A stretch of 64,000 nucleotides of DNA, taken from assembly GCA_047495785.1 (NCBI GenBank), contig JBLDXI010000040.1, forward strand, positions 310,001 to 374,000, given 5' to 3'. Under the pieces are notes generated by a model. It ran no database searches, was not told the DNA's origin, and worked only from the letters and a program-made list of their open reading frames with translations. A program made the translations under genes and the position numbers. Positions within the stretch are counted from its first letter, which is position 1; every line of letters starts with the position of its first letter. The stretch is from Lepidodermella squamata (Eukaryota; Animalia; Gastrotricha). Positions 25,301-51,080 of this stretch are shown here, piece by piece.

Positions 25301-28300
25301 CGGGTTTTACCCGGTAAATTATAAAAAAATTGATTATTGAAAAAACCGAAGATAAGCGGGAATTTAAAAGTTTCCTTTGGAACTAAAATGAGAATTTTGC
25401 GCTAAATTTTCGCTTGAATAATTAAAATTGAAAAAATACGAGGGAAACCAGAGTTCCTATTAGAAACTGAATATTTGAGTATATTCAAAAATTTCAAAGC
25501 TAAAAAAGTAAAATCTTAGATTATATTTTGACAGAAACCTATTACTCTATCTATTACACTATTACACACTATTACACTATTACTACTATACACTATTACT
25601 CTTTCTGCTTATACCTATAGGTATAAGCAGAAAGAGTAATAGTGTCAACGGAAAACTGCTCTTCAATTTTAATATTTTACACGAAAAGCGGTGAGTAATA
25701 ATAGCCGGCCACCTTAATAATTTCGTCATAAAAAAAAAACGTAACGCGAGCTGTTGGTGCGTGGACACGAGTAATTGACAAAGGCTATTATCTCGCGTCT
25801 AATTATCACCGGCTTCTGTGGCGCAATTGGTTAGCGCGTTCGGCTGTTAATGCCTACTCAAGCGGACACCGAAAGGTTGGTGGTTCGAGCCCACCCAGGA
25901 GCGAATATTTTTTTCAAATTTTGATTTGAATTTCAAATTTTTTACCCATTTTTTTTTAATTTGAAAAATCAATAAATATATCAATAAATAAATAAATAAC
26001 TTTTGACAAAATTACTGAAATTTTTGAAATATTAAAAAGTTCAACAAATTTCAAAATTTTCAAAATATTCAAGCATTTTTTCAATTTTACTCACAGAATT
26101 TTTTTTTTATTTTATTTTTATTTTACAATATTGAGAAATTACTCACTTGTTGATTTTGTTTTTGAAGCATTTTCGTCAGGCCTAAGATGGCTTTATCGCG
26201 GACAGTGAGCTGTTTCGAGAATTTCGCCAGTTCAGAAGCCATCGCAGTCAGCATGGCGTCTTTGTTCTGGTCGAAAAGTTGAGCAACAACGAGAGCCGAG
26301 TTCGAGGTAGAGGCGGCGGCGGGCGATGAAGCCGACCGCGGAAGACCCATGTCGCAATCGTCGCAGCTCGACGTTGGCGCAACGGCTGTTTTAGCCAATT
26401 CATCCGACAGAGATCTGAAAGAGACGAAAAGCTTGCATTTAAACCATGATTAGCCTCATTTTTCCGGCGCAGGTTCAATTTTTACTAAAGCGCAGTTTTT
26501 TTTACAAAATTGTCTACAGACTAGAGTGAACGGTTCTAACTTCGGACACCAAACAGTCAAAGAATTCTCGGCTTTTGTGGGAATGAAATGGGGGAAAGTG
26601 CCAAGTGGCAAACCTGTGGCCCGGCTATCTGGCTACCTGTAGCAATTTTCCAAATTTTTACATCTATTTACCTTGATTTCTTGTTAATTGTTTAGCCATT
26701 GTCGTGCTGTCCGAAGTTAGGGCCCCAGGTGCCCTAATTTCGGACACATCAAGGTAAATCCCATTCACCTTGAATTTGGAGTCATTCGAAAGCCCTCTAC
26801 TAGGCGATGAGGAATATCTGGTTTGCCGCTTTAAAAAAGATCACATAGCATCGATAAAAAATATTTAAATTTGAAAAAATTCATGAACAATTTGGCGTAT
26901 TTTGACTCGATTTCCTTGAGACAAAGGTATACAGTAACTAGATAACAATGGGAGTGGCAAGTGTGCACCTTAAATTTAGGGTTCCAGCACTAATTTTGAG
27001 ACTCCAGCCCTAGAATTCCACTAAATATGGGTTTTCGGGTTTCAAGTCTTCTCTAGAATCTAAATTTTCCTCTTATCATGCCTAACCGATAGATCGTCAT
27101 ATTACGAGTATTTTGCGCTATAAGCGGTCCGTTTACGAGTTATACTCAAGCCTGCAGAGCTGATATCGATTCCAAGTATCGATTTAAAAAATCAGTGATT
27201 TTACCGATATCACCCGTTGTGGAACCCAACATCGATAGTTTTCTACGCAGTTTAGGGCACCAGGTAGCTAAAATAACAAATCCTAGGATCAGGGAGGGCA
27301 TCGGTATCGATAAAACTGAAAACGCCGAAATCGCAATAAGAATGTTTGTTCGAGCGGCCGAGTGAAAAATGACCAAACAAAGCTTTAGAATTATGAAATT
27401 ATAAAATATGAATAATGAAATATGAACTATACGAAGTATAAAATAGGTAATATAGCGATTTTCAGATTCAAATGCTTCTTGAAGTCAAAACGCGCGCGAA
27501 ATGCAAGTGATAAACACGCGGACCTCTGCTAGCCGCAAAGAACGAGGCTAACCGCGAAAAAGCGACAGGAAAATCGTGGCTTGAGAATCACTGAATTAAG
27601 TAATCCCCTTTGTACCTATCATTTTGCATCATTGGTATCTTGATTTCAGGTGAATTTTCAAAGTTAAAAGCAATAGCTAGAATGAACATCAATAAAAATT
27701 AAAAATATAAATTTCAATTTTTCAGTTTTGATTCATCAACCATTGTTGCGTCACAAAATTGAGCGCGTAAACAGTTAAATTTTGGTTTTTTTAATCGCCG
27801 AAAACTTGGCAGCGCGAGAGCTCTAATTTCGGACGTCCGAAATTAGGCACACTACCCTGTCCGAATTTGAGGCACTGTCCGAAGTTAGAACCGTTCACTC
27901 TATATTTAGCGGAACAAAATTTAAATGCCGCCAAGCCAATTTCGCCTCAAACACAAGGTCGCTTTTCGAATATTTTTACTTTTTACGAATTTAAGGTAAT
28001 GTATGAATTCTGAAGTGAAAAATGCGTCATGTACAGGATTTTACGCTGAATTTGAAGATGATTCAATAAAAGAGATCTCCGAAATGCGGTTTTAGGATAC
28101 AAAATTCCGAAATTCGGCTCCGCTAAAGTAAGACCCGATTTTCTACCCTGAACAATTTTTCTCTGATTGAAGGGGGGCTTAAAAAAGCTATTAATTTGGC
28201 AGAAATTCAAGAAAATTCATCGGACACGAAAAAAAGGAAAATTTGCGGAATTTCAAGACAGCACAAAAGGGGCCGCTATCCCTTTAGTAAATTTCAAACT

Positions 28301-38796: not shown

Positions 38797-40755
38797 ATGT
38801 TTTATGATTATATCCAACTGGCGAGCAATTTATTGTTAACTTATGGATGTATAATTTCAGCAATTGAAATACCCCTTGAAGCCCCTCCAGCGATTCCCAG
38901 TGAATGCCTGGGAGCGAACGCGACAGGTAAAGCTTCCGAGCAAGAAGTGGCCGATATTTTCTTCAAACCTTACGGAAAATGGACGCGGCCAAGACTGAAC
39001 TCAAGCGATACGGTGCTAGTCGACATAAGCTTTGTGCTCTCTTCTATAACTGAAGTGGTGGGCATATGCTTTAAAGTACCCGAATTCTTTCAAAATGACA
39101 ATTTTCCTAATTTTTTAGTCGGAGCGCGAAAATATAATGAAGATCTCCGGATATCTTAGTGTGGTAATGTATCGAAATTGTGAATATTAAGGATAAAATC
39201 TGAATTTTAGAAGTGGATGGATGGATTTCGTGTCTGGAGGCACAAGTTTCCATATAGCTGTGTTAATTACGTTGGTAAGTTCTCTTCAGTTGAAGGCATT
39301 TTCTTTTGAAGCAAATTGGCTCAATTTCAGTATTACCTGCCAGGAAAATTTGGCTTCCAGACATAGCTCAGGTAATCCACCTTAACAATTTCGAATAGCT
39401 TGATAGATAAGTTTGCAGATGAACTCGGATGGGCGGTACACGTTGATGGGCAAGCAAGATGAGAAAGTTAGGATACACTCAAACGGCTATACGATCTACA
39501 GTCCTGGTGGAACCTTTGCAGTGTATTGCCACTACGACATGACTCTGTTCCCTCTCGATACACAAACTTGCGCTCTCGAATTAGAAAGGTGACCTAATTA
39601 TTTCTACAGAAAGTACTGTAACATTCGATTTTCTAGCTGGCGTTATACGAGGGCTTACATGAAATTCGAAGCCTCGAACAATATAACTTTGAGATACTAC
39701 AAAACAAATGAGCAATGGGATTTGATTGGGACATCAATGGCTATGATGAACTTCTCCTATTTGGACCCTTCAACATCCTTTGAACACATTGAATTCTACT
39801 TCACTATTCGAAGAAAAGTTGGATATTACATGTAAATCTGTTCTTAACTAGCCAGATGCCTTCATTTCAATGTTCATTTAGGGTTAACGTCATAATTCCA
39901 AGCCTTCTGATCTCTTTGGCACATTTAGCGGCTTTTGCTGTTCCGAGCCATGAATCAGAGAAAATCTGCATCTCTTTCACTTGTTTACTTGCCTACTTGG
40001 TTTTTCAAACTATGGTCGTCGAAGATTTGCCAAGGTATGATGCTTTTAACCCTAAGATTTCCAATCAAACACGATTTTGGATCAAGATCAAGTGACAACA
40101 TTCCTCTCCTCACGATCTATATCGCCCTGCAAATGGCTTACATTGCAATTTCAATTGTAAGATGACATTGAGCTGTGACCCTCCTTAATTCTTTCCATCT
40201 CAGCTCGGCGAAGGCTTGGGAATGTATGCGGTGAATCATATATACTCCCACGGGGCATTTGCCCCAGCGCATGTTCCTGCCTGGCTGCTTTGCTTTTTCA
40301 AATGCGTTGGAATGTTGGTCTGCATGCCTTATCAACCGCAATCAGTTCATCGAATCGACGAGATAGCTAACGCGGATCTTGACGATAGCTTCGAACTCTC
40401 GACAACGAATGGCGGGTCGTTCAGTGAAAGTGAAGTCCCGAATGGCCAACCCTCATCTGATTCGAACGGCGCCCCGCCACCCGGTGGTTACATCAAATCG
40501 AACGGAACTTCCCGCGCCAACAAATCCCGGTCCCAGCAGAAATCGACTACAGCTGAGATAAAGCGGAAAGAGAGCATGCACGTAGCTGAGAACTGGCATG
40601 TTGAATTTGATATGAGGCAAATGCAGTGGTATTACGTATCGCACGTTGTTGACCGCTTTTTCGCCGTTTTTTACATTCTATGCATTATCGTTACGCCTAT
40701 TGCGCTTTTCGCAATTTACGCGGAGATTCACCAACGCGAACACGGCCATCACTAA
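38797..40755 (+). CDS. Divergent Cys-loop ligand-gated ion channel subunit A (nAChR-like, non-alpha)
   Basis: RPRLNSSDTVLVDISF, IWLPDIAQMNS, Cys-loop CHYDMTLFPLDTQTC, ESWRY, NEQWDL, M1 NVIIPSLLIS, M2 SEKICISFTCLLAYLVFQTMVVEDLPRSS, M4 WYYVSHVVDRFF. The start codon is uncertain. Confidence 0.9.
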
Positions 40756-40796
40756 ATAAATTCTTGACGTAATTTATCTTAGAAATTTGCGATTTA

Positions 40797-42733
40797 ATGA
40801 AAGCAATAGCTGGCCTTCTTATCCTTCTGCGGAGCTTTTCATCTTTATTGGCTCAGCCTACTATACCAAGGCCGGCAGATTGTGCTTACTCCACCAAGGC
40901 GGTGTCAGATCAGGACGTTGAAGACAACATTTTCAAGAAATTCGATGCATGGCAACGACCAGTGTTGAATGCTACGCAACCGATAGTCGTCAATCTGACT
41001 TTTGTCCTGTCTTCTATTGCTGATGTGGTAACTTGGCTTAATAATGAGAATAACTTGAAATTTATATATTCCACCTAGCGCGAGAGGGAGCGAATCATGA
41101 AAATCTCTGGCTACCTCAGCGTGGTAAGATCATATTCAGCGAAATTTGTCTAAATTCGCGAAAAATTCTCAGAGATGGATGGATGAGTTCAGAGTTTGGG
41201 CAAATACCTCCTATAAATGTGTCGATTACGTCGGTGAGTTAATGATGAGAATCCCAGATTTTCATACCTCAACTCTATTTTCTAGTTCTACCTGCTAGGA
41301 AGATATGGATCCCCGATATAGCTCAAATGAATTCGGATGGCCGTTACATTCTGATGGGGAAAGAAAAGGAGAAAGTCAGAATCTACGCAAATGGCTATGC
41401 GATTTACAGCCCGGGAGGGACATTCGAGATTTACTGTGAATACGATTTGAGACTGTGAGTTCGATTGAGTATCAAGTTGAAATTCTAAATCAACTTCTCA
41501 TAGATTTCCCTTCGACACTCAGGTAAGAATTTGCCAGATTCTTGCTAAATAGAGCTAACCCTACCTCGTCATTAAGGCATGTACTATTGAGCTAGAAAGG
41601 TGAGTTACAACTGAGAAGCTTTGAAGGGTTAAAGTAATTCCGTGCAGTTGGAGATATTCCAACTCTGAAATGAGATTTTACCTGTTTACCAACGTCACGA
41701 TGAAATACTTCAAGCCTAATGAACAATGGGACGTAGCAGGCCTATCGATGAAGCTGTCCAACGACTCGGTCCGCATGACAAATTCATTCGACCATGTCGA
41801 TTTCATCATCAAAATCAAACGAAAATCTATGCATTACATGTGAGTACTGCATATGGGTTCTCGCAGCATTCAGCTTTCATTTTTTAACCTTCGCATAGGC
41901 TTAACGTCATAGTGCCCAGCATTCTGATATCGATTGCCCACATTGCCGCGTTTTCAGTGCCTATTCGTGATGATAAAAGGATTACGATCACTTTCACCTG
42001 CCTCCTGTCGTATTCGGTTTTTCAGACCATGGTTTTAACCGATATCCCAAGGTAGGATTATTTTACCGTTTTCCAAATCCAGTGAAGTTTTTCTCAGGTC
42101 TAGTGACAAAATTCCTTTGTTGACTACTTACATCGACCTACAACAAGGTTTTATCGCCCTATCAATGGTAAGTCTTGAATCCTTACCGTGAATTATTAAT
42201 TATTTGAAGCTGTTTATCAGCTCGGTGAAGGTCTCGCCCTTTGGCTGTTGAGTAACGTCTATATCTACGGAGATTCTAAACCGAAAAACGTCCCCAATTG
42301 GATGTTTTGCGTCGCTCAAGGCATTGGATGTTGCCTCAATATGTTCTATCACCCTCCAACTGCACCACCACCCCCACCTCAAGCAGCTTCAGTAGCCGAG
42401 CGGCGCCGAAGTCAGCATTACTCTGTGGATAAGAAAAGCGGCAATCATTACAAGAAGCAAAGTGTCCAAGCCGACCGAAGGGGTAGCGTCTATCACGTCA
42501 ACGGCGATTTCAGACGGCAGAGCATGATCCCACCCGGTGGACTGGTAGTAGATCTCAACAGCTCATCATATTTCGATGGCGATCGTGACTTGGATGGCGA
42601 TGAGAGCAAACAAGAGTTGGACACGCGCCAAATGAAATGGCACTTTGTCGCCCATGTTGCCGGGCGGCTTTTCGCCTTCATCTATATTCTCAGCATTTTC
42701 ATAACTCCAATCGCCATGTTTGCAATGTACTAA
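40797..42733 (+). CDS. Divergent Cys-loop ligand-gated ion channel subunit B (tandem paralog, non-alpha)
   Basis: Signal MKAIAGLLILLRSFSSLLA, RPVLNATQPIVVNLTF, IWIPDIAQMNS, Cys-loop CEYDLRLFPFDTQAC, ESWRY, M2 DDKRITITFTCLLSYSVFQTMVLTDIPRSS, M4 WHFVAHVAGRLF. Confidence 0.9.
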
Positions 42734-43493
42734 GAGGGACAGTGATTTCTCATTCAGAAAAAAATAAAATTCGTATGTATCAGCTTATGGCTATTGCCCG
42801 TTGGGAGTCGCAGCGGTATGTCTAGCCTCCGCAAAGTGGTCCAATTTAGCGGCTTTTACTGCGTAGCGATTCAGTCAAAATCAGCTTTTACAATTGTGTC
42901 CTAATTGGGAAGGGCTATTGTCTGCTTTCGTCATTACAGCAAGTGGGCAGGACCAAAAATGACCGCGCCATGACGGAATTCTTTAGCCACTTCACTTCAC
43001 TTCCTCTCTCAATGCTACATCCAAATTTGACCTTCCAAAAATAGATTATCGGTTGATTTAGAGTAATGCAGTTGCAGGATAGTATGAATCTTGAAAATGC
43101 TATGAATTTATTAAAATGATGCTTGATTCCGATCAGCAGTGCGAAAATTCCACCCATGTGTGCGGGCAGGAATACAGGAAATGACGATATGATTCACGCG
43201 TTATTTGTAGGAATGTTATTGCTTCCCTAAAGCAAATATCGGAAAAAAGCGATTGCGTGGCTTTTCAGCGCTAAATAATTCTGCGACCAACTGCACCAGA
43301 AATTTTAATTTTCAACACGTCAGAAAAAACCTACGCATCCGAAATTAAAAACACCGCTTTTGTATTATTTCATCTACGCGACCTACGCGTGTTTTTCTGG
43401 CAAGCCATAATGTAATAAACATTTTTGATTACTATCGGATTTTTGTCGCGCTAGAATCAGATTAATTTTCAATTTATCATATAGTTTCTACCA

Positions 43494-44137
43494 ATGGCAA
43501 GGCTTGCAGTGATAACATCGCTACTTATCTCATGTTTAGCTGTGGCGACTTTAGCAGCTCCGGCTAAGGTCGCGAGGCAGAAGAACCGGTCGTTTAAGAA
43601 CTCGGAATCCCAAAACAAAGTAGTTGTAGCAGACCCAGAGGCTGGGGAGGCTGCTGGAGAGGCTAATCAAGGCCAACTGGTCGAAGCAGTTCGTGATTTG
43701 GTGTTGGGCAAACTCGAGGAGACTGAACTGGAAGAAATTCGTAATCTGCTGAAAAGTGAGTCCGAAATTATAGTGGACAATTTTCTTAATGAATCACTTT
43801 TATTTCTTAAAGGCTCAACGGACTCAGACCGACGTCAACAAATGATTAGGCGTATTGCTGACTCAATCCGGGGCCTCACTAGTAAATGCCCACCTACTCT
43901 CCCTGCTGCCTTCTGCAAGCAACCGTAAGTAAAATGCTATTAGATATTGGAATGTGGGTGGATTTTTATTGCAAATTTGCATGATTGAATTCATCACGGA
44001 CGTTGTTTTTATCCAGGTTGACATTCTTTCTATGGATGAAGGAGGTGCGCAATCAAGAGAAGGAGAGGCAAAACTACGAATACGTTAAGAAGTTCATCAA
44101 TGATCTTTACATCAACAGCAACAAAGAATCGAATTAA
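43494..44137 (+). CDS. Secreted protein of unrecognised family, paralog 1 of 4
   Basis: Signal peptide, then RRQQMIRRIADSIRGLTSKCPPTLPAAFCKQP, an intron, and LTFFLWMKEVRNQEKERQNYEYVKKFINDLY..*. There is probably an extra in-frame intron at ~43757. Confidence 0.85.
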
Positions 44138-45534
44138 CATTTTATAGAATTCTAGTTATTTCTGCCTAATGTATATGAAATTGTTCTCGACTCTCCTTTT
44201 GTCTGTGATCTGTGATCATCATCTCAACTCGCGTGGCTATTTTTAGTCCTGAATCAATTTCCGCTTTTCTCTATTTCTGAATTTACTCTCTCGCTAGGTC
44301 GATGCCTGGAGAAAAGTCGTTTATTTGAACATAGAAATTCTAGCTTAATTATGAAAATTATAGTACTGCTTCACATTTTTCTTGTATTTTCTATTTGCGT
44401 GAAATGAAATTTTTCCACAAATCAGTCTTTTTCGGTGTATAGCTATATCATTTTCTTATGGCCTTTCCCGAGAAGTGGTGCATTCCCAGTTGGGCATCGG
44501 TCACTAATAACGCATAATTTTGAGTCCTAATAGCTTACGTCCAGGTCACGGAAATGCTATCAAACCATACTTATACGCAGGTAGAATCTAATTAGGATGG
44601 TGTTGGCATTCGTAAATTTGAAAATGTGGTTACTAAGGCTATAATGACGAGGTCTGCCGTATTTGGACGATTGACGGCTTCATCTGATGAATCGGCCTGA
44701 TGAGAAATTTAATCATCAGCACGCATTTCAGCAAGGCGCCGCTCGCCATGCTGCGCTGTCTCTTAACCGGATGAGACTGTGGAATGTGATACCTTGGCGA
44801 TTTTCCATACGATAAGCCTAATTAAAGTAGCATTTTCACAGTTCGCCTTCAGCCCCCATTTAGTTCAAAGTCAAAAAGGTCTAGATCATCCATCATGTCG
44901 CAGAAATTCTCTGTGAAATGGGATACTCATGAAAACAACAGAATGAGAGTTCGTCGCCTCTCCAAAACGTGATATCCGTAAGCGGCAAGCCGGAACCGTG
45001 TGTTTGCCAGTAATAGTCACGGCACTGCCTAATCCTACGCAGCTGAAAGATGATTTCAGCATTTTTCTATCCTTCAAATTCTAGGCCGTCCCAAACCAAA
45101 TTTTTTCGTCCTGAAAACCCAAGATTTAATTACGAGTCTGAGAATTTATTTCAAATGATTCGGAACTAAGCGACCATCAATAATATTATTGTTTTTTTCT
45201 ATCACTGGACGTATATCAGACAAGTGGGCGCTGGGAACCTGTTATCATCAAATTATTCAGTAATTCACAGCGTAAAACTGCAACGACGCCGTGATTTGTC
45301 GATACAAAGTCAATTACAGCCGAGAAAAAATGCAATCGCCGCTTGAACGCATGAACGACTTCCATTAAGCGAGATTTGTTCAGCGACTGACCAACTTTTT
45401 TCACTGACAGGAAAAGCACTCAGAGCGTGTTGTCTCTGCGTTTTTTTCTGATAATTTAACTCATTTTCTCATTCTTTCGAAAAAATCTCCTGCATATATT
45501 TTAGAATTTAAACTTCAGTTAGCAATCCGCAGAT

Positions 45535-46262
45535 ATGGAATTGTCGGTTTTAGCAATTTTACTGTTGACCGTGGCTGTTTTCTGCGAAGAGATTCCCCAG
45601 GACTTGGCTGAGATTTTCGAACAGAGCGAGGATAAATCAAAATTTATCGACGAATTGCTCGAAGCTGGTGACTACTTAACGAACCAAAACGCTGCAATGT
45701 CATCGATAGGCCTTCGAACGGGTAATTCCCAGCTGAGTAAGATGAAGGCTCTTCAAAACATGGTATCGGCAAAGGCAGCGAAGGACCCTCGTAAGGCGGC
45801 GGATCAAGCTACGAAGCAAAAGGAGCCCTCGAACATCGAAGGCAGCCGGCGTCAACTCGACGAAATGCGAACACTACTAACGAGCTCTGACAACTCGCCG
45901 CGGAGGCAGATGCTTCTCAGGATGATTGCTGACGCTGTGAAAGCCCGTTCTGGCAACTGCCCATCCACGCTACCACCAGGTTTCTGCAGGCAACCTTTGG
46001 TTAGTTATTAGCATAGGTCTTCTTATCGTTTTAAATTTCGATTTTATTTCCATTTTAGACATTCTTCCTTTGGTTGAAGGAAGTACGTGAGCAGGAAAAG
46101 GAACGTGAAATGTACGATGCTGTGAAGGGCATGCTGACGGCGATGTTCTCTAGTCCGGCTGATGCGAAAGCGCTTGAAAACAACAAGCCAGCCCACGCTG
46201 CTGGATCGCTGCTCCCCGCCGCCGCCTCGCCGAGACTCTTGAAAGCAGCACGAGCTAACTAA
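45535..46262 (+). CDS. Secreted protein of unrecognised family, paralog 2 of 4
   Basis: Signal peptide; RRQMLLRMIADAVKARSGNCPSTLPPGFCRQPL|TFFLWLKEVREQEKEREMYDAVKGML..*. Confidence 0.85.
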
Positions 46263-46898
46263 CACGCCTCCGCGGCAATCTTCATCGTCGTACTAGTCTC
46301 TATCGCCCTCAACTCGTCCTTTAAAATTGCTGAACGATCAAAGCATTGCATCCGCAACCGGTCTCATGGATGATTAGTGCACAATGATTTAGCTTAGGTT
46401 CAATATTTTAGTTAAGTTTCAGTTTATCAAACTTTAAGTTGAAAATTTCACTTAAACAATTATCATTTCTGTAGCACCAATTTGAATATTTTCGATTTTT
46501 TGTGTGAAGAAACGCGAATAAACATCAGAGAGTTGATTGAGAGTCTTATAAGCGGGGGTGGAGGGATTCAATTTTTTGAGAGTTACCGGACATTGGAAAA
46601 ACCAGTCTAATAACTTTTGTCATCACATGTGTGCGTTAATGCAAGTTTTATTAAATTAAAAAATTCCTATCATTTACGAACACAGACGTCATGTTTCGGG
46701 TCGTGATCTGGGGGAGATATGGCAAATTAGGCCTCAGTACTCAGATCGCCAGGCTTATTTAGAGGGCGCAGGTTCATCGATGCGAGATAATGGCAACATA
46801 CATGATATAAATCAACCATCCACGTAAAAGCAACGTAAAACGTAGAGACGATCTGAATTTTTGCCACTATTCTAGCTTATTTCTGCTTATTAGAAAAC

Positions 46899-47521
46899 AT
46901 GTTTATTCGAATTTTAACACCGAGCCTTTTGATTGGGGTATTTTTATCCACCTTTGTAGCATCAGACCCGGCTTTTGTGACTCACCTGCGCCGTGACAAA
47001 CAGCCTCGAGCAGCCATCGCTACGAATAAACTGCGTGTTAGGGTTGGCGATCAAATCCCGATAACTCAGGGCGCGAATGCTGCTTCGAAAGACGAAGGCT
47101 GGCTAAGCGCAGAAGCTGCAACTCCAGCGACGGATGCGAGTGCGAAAAATCAAAGCCGAGGCAATGCAACGGAGAGTATGAAGTCCCTAACATTTATTAG
47201 GAGTGTCCTTTTGAGTAAGGCCAGCAACCCCCAGCGGCACAACGTCTTGCGAGCTATTGCTAACCTAGTCAAAACGAACTCGAAGCAATGCCCTCCTTCG
47301 ATGCCTGCTGAATTTTGTCACCAACCATTGGTAAACTTATTGCATAGCTCGCTGTTTCAGATTTTAACCTAGTTTTTCCTCTATAGACATTTTTCCTCTG
47401 GTTGAAGGAGTATCGAAATCAAGAAAAGGAACGAGAGATGTATGAAAACGTTCGCCGTCTTCTTGTGCAACTACTCGCAAATCCGCAGCTGAACGCAGGC
47501 GAGCAAATCCCAGCAAATTAG
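46899..47521 (+). CDS. Secreted protein of unrecognised family, paralog 3 of 4
   Basis: Signal peptide; QRHNVLRAIANLVKTNSKQCPPSMPAEFCHQPL|TFFLWLKEYRNQEKEREMYENVRRLLVQLL..*. Confidence 0.85.
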
Positions 47522-48179
47522 CTATGAAGATCAAATCGCTATAAAACCAAATCAATAGCCAATCACAAATTTGTTTTTCCTATTCGATAATTTGTATCAC
47601 TTTGCATGATCAAGTAAAATTTGAGCATTTGTCATTTGGCTGATTGCTGACCATCAAAGTTTTAAATCTGAAAAAAATCAAGGTCAATATCTATTGTGAC
47701 CGAAAAATCTCAGACGTAAACAGTGAAACGCAAGCAAAATTTTGGCACAGAATTTTCATTACAGGAAAAACAAACCGGGAGCATATGTCGAGTGGGAAAT
47801 TTTTCTAGTATATTATGCGCCTTTCTCGGCTGCGCTTTATAGCAATTTGGATTCCGGAAATTTATTTTAGTCCGCATCAAAACCAGCACGGAAGCTTTTG
47901 CGTCAACACGTGATTTCCTGGTCCATTTAGTCGGTGCGTGTGAGATTAATATAGCAATTCCGGTATTGTTGTGGCTCTAAAGCGAGGGCGAATAAATCGC
48001 GCACCTCATTTTCACGCATGCGTGATTTTTAATATTACACGGATGTAAGAGGTGTGAAGAGAAAAATTAATAGCCTGGGAGGCAGAGGCTGTATTGCGTC
48101 TGGGCTTTTCAAAAAAGCCAATCAATTTCAGTCGGTAGAATTTCAAGCACGAAAAATCGTCTCATTATCGAGAGCATAA

Positions 48180-48731
48180 ATGGCTTCGCTTCAAAAAATT
48201 GTACTCTTAGCTATGCTGGTTGTAGCCTCCCAACAGTCGGAAAATTCGTTGAAAAATCGTTCGGCGAATAAAGTCCCTGAAAGAGCCGCCAAATTGAAAT
48301 CGCTTGTCTCTGGGAAGCTTAAATTGCGAAACGGAATCGCGATTCCGACCATCCCGACCGTTCCACCAGTTACGAAGCCGAAACCTTTAAGCAACTCGAT
48401 CGAATTCGGCAATCAGGCTGGTCAGATTCGAGATATGTTGATGAGCGGCAGCGACAACCCCCGCCGGACTGAACTTCTCCGCCTCATCGCGAATGCTGTT
48501 AGATCGAAAACGAACAAATGCCCAGCTTCGTTGCCTGCTGAATTCTGCCATCAGCCACTGGTGAGTTATTGGACTGAAAGATGAAAGCTGATTTTAATCT
48601 TGAAATTTTAGACATTCTTCCTGTGGATGGACAAAGTTCGGAGTCAGGAACAGGAGAAGGAAACGTATGAAAATGTCAGACAACTGCTCGTTCAACTCAT
48701 GTCCGATCAGCCTAATTTGATCCAGCAATAA
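48180..48731 (+). CDS. Secreted protein of unrecognised family, paralog 4 of 4
   Basis: Signal peptide; RRTELLRLIANAVRSKTNKCPASLPAEFCHQPL|TFFLWMDKVRSQEQEKETYENVRQLLVQLM..*. Confidence 0.85.
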
Positions 48732-49121
48732 AACTTCCTTAAAATGCCCTGAAATCCCGAGTTACACATTTTTTACTTCGGTTTAGTTAAGCACGTCTTG
48801 ATTTTATTTTCGATTTTTCATTTTGATTTTTGGAATAAACTTACGGCTTTTATCGCATGTTTCACAGGATACAGGATTTTGAATGATTCATGATTCATTT
48901 CTAGTTCCTGGTTTTATTCATTTTCAGGCGACGATAAATTTCAAACATAAAATAAGCGTGATTCCCCGTATGATTGCACATTGAAATGGATGAATTTACG
49001 TATTTGTGACAAAATTAAACGTATTATAATAATATTTTCTGTTGAAAGATTGACAAATCACAACCGTTCTAATCTAAAACCACGATTGTTCTTTACACTA
49101 TGTAGCCTATAGAACTCGCGT

Positions 49122-49653
49122 CTAACGGATGGTGAGGACGAGGGCCACGATGAGACCGTACAGACCGAGTACCTCGGCGAAGATGAGGATCAAAATCATG
49201 CCGATGAAGAGACGCGGCTGTTGCGCCGTACCACGGACACCAGCATCACCGACCACACCGACAGCGAAGCCGGCAGCAAGACCGGACAGGCCAACCGAAA
49301 GACCAGCGCCCAAGTGGGTGAAGCTCTTGCCGAGCAGGTACTTGCCTGGGGTAAGGTCGATGCCCTGGGCGATGACTACGGCGACGACGAGACCGTAGAT
49401 GGCAATGATACCCGCCATGACGACGGGGATGATGGATCGCATGATGAGCTCAGGACGCATGACGGCCATCGCGGCGATACCGGTGCCAGACTTAGCGGTA
49501 CCGTAGGCAGCACCGAGGGCTGAAAAACATGGAACTGTAAAATCTTTGATGGTTCAATTTTTCGAAATCCTTACCGCTGAAAACCATCGCGGAAGTGGCT
49601 CCCATGGCTCCGAAGAACGGAGCGTAGGGTGGGTAGTCGGCACTGTCAGACAT
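49122..49653 (-). CDS. ATP6V0C: V-type proton ATPase 16 kDa proteolipid subunit c
   Basis: Two exons (49575-49653 and 49122-49519) encode 158 aa: [76 protein letters not shown], including the proton-binding Glu. Confidence 0.98.
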
Positions 49654-49794
49654 TTTTTGATTTTGGCTAAAGTTAATACTACCTAAGCTGTAAAATTGAA
49701 TGTTCAGAGTTCATGACAAATGGGAAAACATGTTTGACGCTGTATTCAATCCCAAACCTCCGACAAACGTCAGTCAATAACCTCGGTGTATGTA

Positions 49795-51080
49795 TAACCC
49801 TAACCCTAACCCTAAACCTAACCCTAACCTTGGCCCAGTCTTAGTTCTACCCCTAACCTTAATCCTAACCCTAATAACCCTAACCCTAATAACCCTAACC
49901 CTAACTCTAACCCTAACCAATATCTTGCCCTCAACCATAACCCTAACGCCATAACCCTAGCCTCAAACTAAATCTTAACCCTAGCCCCAGTCAGTCTTCA
50001 AGCAGTAACTTTAGTCATACTACACATACCCCATCCTACTCGTAACCCTAGATTTAACTACAACTACAATTAAAAATGTACACCCAGCGTTCATCACAAC
50101 TCTAACCCTAGCCTTGGATTTAATAAGAACCCTGGCCCTGAGCACGCTCCTAGTCCTGCACTAAAACAAAACTTAAAACTGAATCCATCCCTTGCCTATT
50201 TTCCTAAACCAAACTTCGGCCTTTAGTGCCTAACATTCAAATATAATCCCCAACGCTAGCCATAACCACTCCTACAATGGCTGATGGTTTTTATTCAGCC
50301 CGTTGCATAATATCAGGCTCTACATTGTGAATGTTCAATATTCGCTTAGCTTAACAGCATATTCTAGGAAGTTGTATAATCTTCGGTCAAAATAAAATGT
50401 AAAACACAGCAGTACTAATGCTTCTGCTGTCATTTGACACGGGATTTGGGCGTTATCTCGTTGTTGCGAGTGGCACGGCGGTGTTTGATAACGATAAGGC
50501 TGCTTGCTTCTTCCTCGCTGTTCAATGAACCAGCTTAATAAGCCACGCTGTTCAACTCACAGCCGATATTGGCGTAGTTATCAGCTCGCCGAAAAAAATA
50601 CGGGCTAATCACTGCGCTTGTGATAACCTCGACCGTGGGGCTTTGATTCACTCATTTACAGGTCATTTTTATACTGGATCATTAAAGGTCGTCAAGCCAA
50701 AAGCGATCTAATTCCCTCAAATTGTAGTATCGCTATATTTATTAGATTGCTGCAGTAGACAATTAAAGATTAAAGCATCATTGCCAATGGCTAATATGGA
50801 CTCGAACAGCAGCGGCCCTATCATGATGGGCAGGCAACAAATTGTTAGTCTGAACTCTGAAAATCCTGGATAAACGCATTGAGGCTGGCCGCGAACAGGC
50901 GGAATCGGCGGTTCTACGCGAAAAACAAATAATAATAAATTGAGTTAACGAATATTGCGATTCGGCCTACCGGAGACACAGGTATCAAGTGCAAAACCTT
51001 CATTCGGACGACTTCATCGATAAAGACAGTCGAATTGTCACGGCATTTTGATGAATATTACTGTGACCCGATTCAAATCA
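49795..51080. repeat. Duplicated block, copy 1: interstitial (CCCTAA)n telomeric-type array decaying into a non-coding segment
   Basis: Near-perfect taaccc units at 49795-49920, degenerate hexamers to ~50280, then sequence that aligns with ~60780-61388. Confidence 0.85.

Follow-up and report, generated by a model that had tools for sequence, protein, structure and literature searches.

A 64,000-nucleotide stretch of the genome of the gastrotrich Lepidodermella squamata (assembly GCA_047495785.1, contig JBLDXI010000040.1, positions 310,001–374,000; this whole stretch is called the window, and its own numbering is used for coordinates) contains four genes in tandem. We consider these genes to be, probably, paralogs from a large family whose members are small secreted proteins, each carrying a predicted helix/disulfide-loop/helix domain; the family is seen in this genome and in environmental relatives. 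The new protein family, defined by a CP-loop/F[FY]xW secreted hairpin, is real and well supported, and it is a candidate new Pfam family. Both the sequence and the alignments bear out the organisation described for each gene in the initial annotation, which consists of a signal-like segment, a divergent spacer and a conserved C-terminal domain.

Gene models and splicing of the four-gene cluster

The four genes lie on the forward strand with starts at 43494, 45535, 46899 and 48180, where the initial annotation had also placed them. According to the open reading frames (ORFs) and the sequence, gene 1 (G1, 43494–44137) comprises three exons (43494–43755, 43813–43924 and 44017–44137, including the stop codon). 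Two exons each make up gene 2 (G2, 45535–46262; exons 45535–45999 and 46059–46262), gene 3 (G3, 46899–47521; exons 46899–47330 and 47387–47521) and gene 4 (G4, 48180–48731; exons 48180–48560 and 48612–48731).

To examine expression, three public sequencing runs (X1, X2 and X3) were aligned to window positions 43400–48800. Run X1 is cDNA-like, its depth being zero or very low in several intergenic bins and a SMART cDNA oligonucleotide occurring as a loose end, and run X3 is likewise cDNA-like, with coverage confined to the gene bodies. Run X2 is DNA-like, its contigs continuing through introns and intergenic DNA. All five predicted introns are skipped at GT..AG by contigs of runs X1 and X3. In G1 these are the introns at 43756–43812 (57 nt, frame kept) and 43925–44016 (92 nt, phase 2, inside the Pro codon preceding LTFFLW), and in the other genes they are the phase 0 introns at 46000–46058 (G2, 59 nt, between QPL and TFFLW), 47331–47386 (G3, 56 nt) and 48561–48611 (G4, 51 nt). 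The skip of the G4 intron in X1 is identical to that in X3, with two allelic letters at the junction, and the G2 junction is uninterrupted in an intronless ortholog, the metagenomic protein P0001 described below. The four cluster genes are real, transcribed and spliced as predicted, and they are expressed in adults. Failure of the TFFLW exon to be spliced on, or lack of expression, had been named beforehand as the outcome that would speak against the genes; the contigs of X1 and X3 show the exon joined and the genes expressed.

Two details of the earlier gene models require revision. The last intron of G1 had been recognised, but the in-frame 57 nt at 43756–43812 had been taken as coding, whereas they are skipped as an intron in two runs, and their removal gives a better fit of G1 to its paralogs. 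The last intron had also been described as lying at a shared position, which holds for G2–G4, where it is in phase 0 after the Leu codon, but not for G1, where it is in phase 2 within the Pro codon, 4 nt upstream.

Six low-depth (2–6) 'opposite strands' joints were present in run X1 within the unique intergenic DNA between G1 and G2 (window 44535–45444). No inverted repeat was found in the G1–G2 intergenic DNA at these joints, and the joints are probably artefacts of the library. An origin of the G1–G2 spacer from a transposon or repeat was rejected, as this DNA is without repeats and is unique in the genome save for a second copy of the cluster on contig C29.

A previously undescribed C-terminal domain

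The conserved domain has a length of ~75–90 residues, is located at the C-terminus and is split in the cluster genes by the short intron just 5′ of TFFLW. From the alignments, its first half is encoded on the forward strand at 43815–43925 in G1 (helix 1 and the Cx8C loop; alignments A4 and A5), 45862–45999 in G2 (pre-helix, helix 1 and the Cx8C loop), 47193–47330 in G3 and 48423–48560 in G4. The second half follows on the same strand at 44018–44134 in G1 (LTFFLW helix 2; alignments A2 and A5), 46059–46154 in G2 (TFFLW helix 2, with an unconserved tail at 46155–46259), 47387–47518 in G3 and 48612–48728 in G4. The cluster genes entered the alignments as separate exon pieces, and whole-domain work used naturally intronless relatives, including L010, L012 and P0001. 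Aligned, the exon-1 tails of the four genes share invariant C, P, P, F, C, Q and P residues (C-P...P..F-C.Q-P), and the exon-2 heads share an invariant TFFLW..R.QE.E..Y..V. The family-wide invariants are C-P-x2-hydrophobic-x3-hydrophobic-C, then 2–7 residues, then [S/T/A]-F-[F/Y]-hydrophobic-W-hydrophobic-[R/K]-x-[L/V]-R. In column statistics over 41 sequences, both cysteines, the Phe and the Trp occur in 41/41 and the Pro after the first Cys in 40/41, with two loop positions being hydrophobic in every sequence. The feature that marks membership, C-P-x7-8-C followed within 2–7 residues by [STA]-F-[FY]-hydrophobic-W, is present in all four genes.

A hydrophobic, signal-like segment is located at the N-terminus of all four genes and of the single-exon members with a placeable start Met. 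The spacer between this segment and the domain is unalignable across paralogs, ranges from 13 to 136 residues across the family with a mean Ser+Thr+Pro content of 24%, and is without repeats. Minimal members with spacers of 13–25 residues contain little beyond the signal peptide and the domain, and Thr/Pro/Ser-rich patches (8–9 in 12 residues) occur in the spacers of G4 and of two further members (L016 and L049). The net charge of the domain has a median of +4 in alignment A5 and +5.5 in A6, with a pI of about 9.4–9.8.

An AlphaFold2 model of residues 108–197 of P0001, built on a 45-row alignment (mean pLDDT 87.5, pTM 0.44), contains helices at model positions 2–15, 21–38, 47–50 (within the loop) and 54–89; an earlier model of L012 based on 20 rows was weaker with a similar outline. 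Hydrophobic columns recur every 3–4 positions on helix 1 and along helix 2, and the predicted arrangement fits a hairpin in which a pre-helix and helix 1 would lie against a long amphipathic helix 2. A homodimer prediction for the same residues, in which the family alignment was not used, gave a score of 0.00 that counts neither for nor against binding; the oligomerisation through helix 2 suggested in the initial annotation is hypothetical.

An RR pair is located ~18 residues before the first Cys in G1, G2, G4, P0001 and L009, while G3 has QR at this position and most members have no dibasic pair. Conservation extends upstream of RR (I/M-R-x-x-L), and in the model RR lies in the first turn of helix 1, after the conserved pre-helix. 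We think that the intact domain is the working unit, because RR is mostly absent, the sequence upstream of it is conserved, RR falls in helix 1 and the minimal members consist of signal and domain; the cleavage at RR envisaged in the initial annotation is disfavoured on the same grounds.

Searches for a known family gave no specific match. Pfam was searched with exon pieces (E up to 10), eight full-length paralogs and 29 members of a second, Cx9C branch described below, and only scattered sub-threshold matches were obtained. A sequence profile search of the PDB returned a single chance match (E 0.15), and Foldseek against the PDB, run with the earlier, weaker model, returned 0 matches. With the better model, a wide VIA-align search reached a best Z of 4.9, for the long helix only and against coiled coils. 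Searches of the ESM Atlas by shape gave TM scores of 0.52 or less with no pattern, and Atlas feature searches gave scores of 0.82 or less or no usable match. A literature search gave no specific account of the domain and no paper on gastrotrich secreted proteins. The domain fits no family in Pfam, the PDB sequences, the fold libraries or the Atlas and is previously undescribed, in agreement with the earlier statement that it could not be assigned.

Several families with superficial likeness were considered individually. QPLTFFLW..E.R resembles the start of helix 1 of an HMG box, a candidate rejected for the lack of a Pfam match at E up to 10 and the presence of a signal segment. CHCH proteins (PF06747) are likewise small helical hairpins with cysteine spacings of 8–9 residues, but these proteins of the mitochondrial intermembrane space have two Cx9C motifs in two helices, two inter-helix disulfides and no signal peptide, whereas here one Cx8C or Cx9C pair lies in the loop at the turn, a signal segment is present and no Pfam match was found at E up to 10. 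Insect chemosensory (OS-D, PF03392; C-x6-C ... C-x2-C) and saposin-like SapB proteins were rejected as well, the former since the domain has two cysteines and no Pfam match, the latter since it has two cysteines rather than six and neither a Pfam nor a fold match.

Family members, second copies and relatives

The genome searched comprised 121.2 Mb in 151 contigs. Exon 2 of G3 as the query recovered the four cluster genes and, on contig C29, a second copy of nearly identical sequence, together with other loci. One of these, L010, which carries an entire protein in one 173-aa ORF, gave additional loci when used as a query. Searches with single members yielded 12 and 23 matching stretches. The 45-row domain profile A5 yielded 91 matching stretches at E 0.01 or better, a figure that includes split exons and near-identical second copies (C29/C40 and C25/C26, where C40 is the contig of the cluster); after these were discounted, the tally was at least ~50 distinct family genes. 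The four paralogs do form a tandem array, as initially annotated, but they are not the whole family, with the further members located elsewhere in the genome. Profile matches to other members reach E 1e-16 to 1e-23, and the exon pieces of the four genes match A5 at E 4e-7 to 2e-3 each, values that are partly circular because A5 contains them.

The strong A5 matches form tandem arrays on C17 (at least 8 genes in 12 kb), C12, C19 and C42. The weak matches constitute a second branch with Cx9C spacing, which carries ...ICHQRGSFFVWAQ... and ends in ...RQRLExCMxVFxSAxICHQRGSFFVWAQxLAKxIMxG, and which has its own tandem arrays at C33:794000–826500, C15:447000–467500, C26:504000–519500 (also on C25), C3:927500–932500, C30:766500–772500, C46:707500–714800, C58:355500–361500 and C60:353300–356900. 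Comparison by hhalign links the two branches with 96% probability (E 2.9e-9) over a span that covers helix 1, the loop and the aromatic residues with which helix 2 begins. Genes of the Cx9C branch are mostly single-exon and encode proteins of 100–230 aa, many of which have a third conserved Cys (xxCSNV) ~30 residues upstream. One further member, L022 (C2:1193338–1193562; L022:1231–1980, reverse strand; 250 aa), has the domain followed by a Thr/Lys-rich stretch and a hydrophobic tail, ...NVLSIIFVSISLY, which could be a membrane or GPI anchor.

The entire cluster (window 42500–50000) has an inverted second copy at C29:2854143–2861825 (loci L001, L004, L005 and L007), with 95–98% DNA identity to C40, intergenic DNA included. 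The C29 copy is probably an alternative haplotype, because the genome paper reports divergent haplotypes (PMC11660948); it could also be a recent segmental duplication. Contigs C25 and C26 likewise carry identical family members. Substitutions between C40 and C29 were counted codon by codon over the complete codons of each exon. The domain has 17 synonymous changes and 1 non-synonymous change (pN/pS about 0.02), the sole non-synonymous change affecting the last residue of G4, while the signal, spacer and tail together have 17 synonymous and 8 non-synonymous changes (pN/pS about 0.15; domain versus remainder, Fisher p = 0.057). Both parts are constrained, the domain more strongly, as anticipated when this comparison was proposed in the initial annotation. 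The accompanying description of the linker as freely drifting needs correction: it cannot be aligned between paralogs, but between the two copies it too is constrained.

Outside the genome, an hmmsearch of 1.84 billion protein representatives gave 24 matches, of which about 21 are clear members; the 20 that were looked up are all ENA metagenome-assembly proteins without an annotated name. P0001 (197 aa; profile match E 2.6e-16) is the ortholog of G2. In the part of the domain encoded by exon 1, residues 108–197 of P0001 and G2 are 80% identical in the columns of alignment A5 and about 84% identical by a count from another alignment; for the exon-2 part the identity is 69%. Its gene (L033:992–1585) lies on a 6.4-kb eukaryotic ENA metagenome contig and encodes QPLTFFLW without an intron, and the 4.8 kb downstream of it contain no family neighbour. 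The two organisms thus differ both in the presence of this intron and in how the cluster is laid out. G2 is far more similar to P0001 than to its own paralogs G1, G3 and G4, which indicates that the four-gene array predates the split from the relative bearing P0001. Other metagenome contigs carry tandem pairs resembling the C17 arrangement, beside animal genes (TEAD, formin and cyclin). Word-based protein searches with alignments A1 (exon-1 proteins), A3 (full-length intronless paralogs) and A7 (Cx9C branch) found no relatives, and neither did scans of JGI metagenomes with A8 and with P0001. Judged by sequence, the family has so far been seen only in the L. squamata genome and in environmental relatives. 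The genome's own proteins are absent from the searched protein collection, since the annotation of the published assembly (122.8 Mb, 157 contigs, 43.3% GC, with divergent haplotypes) is available on figshare only (PMC11660948). Chitin_bind_4, 7tm_6 and Col_cuticle_N (arthropod cuticle, odorant receptor and nematode collagen, respectively) were not found in the genome in searches run without a positive control, and an arthropod or nematode origin was set aside.

The cluster is flanked just upstream by exons of two tandem Cys-loop ligand-gated ion-channel genes (window 38797–42733, forward strand), where single exons give weak, sub-threshold Pfam matches to Neur_chan_LBD and Neur_chan_memb. Directly downstream lies a V-ATPase proteolipid (subunit c) gene (49122–49653, reverse strand; ATP-synt_C, E 5e-26), and a hexanucleotide-type simple repeat at 49770–49955 gives (LT)n, (GL)n and (RV)n ORFs in several frames. 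The sole Rfam match in the window is a 92-nt tRNA gene at 25812–25903 (forward strand), which is long enough to contain an intron.

Possible functions of the predicted secreted hairpin

In the mechanism we propose, the protein would enter the endoplasmic reticulum, where the two invariant cysteines would close a small disulfide loop at the hairpin turn and the invariant aromatic residues clustered where helix 2 begins would pack against the hydrophobic side of helix 1 and against the two hydrophobic residues of the loop. Secretion would follow with the protein intact and uncut at RR, and the basic amphipathic hairpin would be the working unit, as suggested by the minimal members that consist of a signal peptide and the domain only. 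The domain is basic in most members, amphipathic and secreted, and the genes are massively tandem-duplicated and adult-expressed. Our leading suggestion for the function, which is a tentative one, is a host-defence or digestive effector that may bind anionic surfaces such as bacterial membranes. Such a role would be analogous to that of the expanded saposin-like caenopores of the bacterivore Caenorhabditis elegans. A diffusible ligand and a subunit of a surface coat or matrix rank only slightly lower. The analogy to saposin-like pore formers (amoebapores, caenopores and NK-lysin) is functional only and lies in their being secreted, helical, disulfide-stabilised and expanded in a bacterivore; the saposin fold is made of five helices with six cysteines that form three disulfides, neither Pfam nor the fold searches gave a match to it here, and membrane activity of the present family is putative.

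A number of points weigh against these proposals. With a net charge of only +1, the G4 domain is almost neutral and in this differs from classic cationic antimicrobial peptides, and helix 2 of the cluster genes is rich not only in Lys and Arg but also in Glu (for example, KEVREQEKERE). Purifying selection as strong as that between C40 and C29 is usually not expected of arms-race effectors. At the level of structure and secretion, the model has a pTM of only 0.44, the disulfide and the helix packing are inferred, and the signal peptides were assigned by eye, composition and a crude hydrophobicity rule rather than by a trained predictor. The inflation of the raw match count by split exons and second copies bears on the size of the family, and its apparent lineage restriction may reflect sampling, with few gastrotrich or meiofaunal proteomes in the databases.

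Diffusible signalling ligands of a cytokine-, hormone- or pheromone-like kind, in which the intact hairpin or an RR-released fragment would bind a receptor and many paralogs would provide many signals, are a credible though doubtful alternative. C. elegans, with roughly 40 insulin-like genes, is an example of many-paralog signals. A signal peptide, a variable spacer and a conserved C-terminal unit make up a prohormone-like layout, strong purifying selection suits a receptor-binding surface, and in the Atlas feature search small prohormone-like proteins came nearest, but with chance-level scores of 0.76–0.82. The RR pair before the first Cys in three of the four cluster genes, P0001 and L009 would also suit a ligand, yet it is missing in G3 and most of the family, lies within conserved sequence in the first turn of the modelled helix 1, and no short peptide is bracketed by amidation signals or by dibasic pairs. 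A count of at least fifty paralogs is, moreover, high for a single class of ligand. Among known ligands, melanin-concentrating hormone (MCH) and elevenin share with the cluster genes a Cx8C ring near the C-terminus of a secreted precursor, with RR upstream in some. MCH and elevenin are peptides of ~17–20 residues flanked by cleavage sites, and they differ in ring sequence. A prohormone with a ring peptide of this type was rejected, given the absence of RR in G3 and most members, a conserved unit that extends over 75–90 residues on both sides of the ring and the lack of a Pfam match. Aplysia attractin, a water-borne protein pheromone of 58 residues with three disulfides, is also a small secreted disulfide-held helical hairpin. 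Attractin was absent from the fold-search matches, and it is not known to share sequence similarity with the family.

Slightly less likely than a ligand role is that the proteins help to build a coat or secretion outside the cells, such as cuticle or scales, mucus, the glue of the adhesive tubes or the egg envelope; the hairpin would then be an assembly or anchoring module and the spacer a hydrated linker. Cuticle and coat proteins typically come in large tandem families with small secreted members, the Thr/Pro/Ser-rich patches in G4, L016 and L049 would suit such a linker, the hydrophobic tail of L022 could serve as an anchor, and in the structure searches helix 2 matched, weakly (Z below 5), only coiled-coil helices that mediate oligomerisation. 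Set against this are spacers that average 24% Ser+Thr+Pro without repeats and are almost missing in several members, and the lack of an odd cysteine in the cluster genes for intermolecular cross-links. Carriers of small hydrophobic molecules, with a pocket lined by the aromatic cluster and perhaps formed within an oligomer, are improbable. Like insect chemosensory (CSP, OS-D) and odorant-binding (OBP) proteins, the members form a large tandem, lineage-restricted family of small helical secreted proteins with short local disulfide loops, here together with invariant aromatics. However, in the arthropod CSP and OBP families a ligand pocket is surrounded by five to six helices, with four or six cysteines, and the two to three helices present here would not suffice for a monomer to enclose a ligand. 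Neither a Pfam match to OS-D or PBP_GOBP nor any other sequence or fold match was obtained, and the arthropod marker families were absent from the genome searches. The possibility that the genes are not a functional family at all, but chance ORFs, pseudogenes or transposon-borne sequence, is practically negligible given their spliced transcripts, the 17:1 ratio of synonymous to non-synonymous changes in the domain between copies, the ortholog in another organism and the intergenic DNA that is unique in the genome.

We regard it as possible, at a similarly tentative level, that the domain represents a new fold-level family confined to Gastrotricha, whose tandem genes, more than 50 in number, would supply the phylum with an extracellular arsenal of its own, used to kill or digest bacteria or to signal chemically. 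Its building block would be a disulfide-stapled, basic, amphipathic hairpin that other animals lack. Large lineage-restricted secreted families are found in nearly every newly sequenced phylum, and for the present this one is a well-founded addition to the catalogue more than an unexpected finding. The molecular biology of the phylum Gastrotricha is almost unexplored. A single genome paper and a single adult transcriptome are available for these animals (PMC11660948), and at least 50 expressed, constrained, secreted genes with an undescribed domain provide a handle on how gastrotrichs deal with microbes, with surfaces or with each other.

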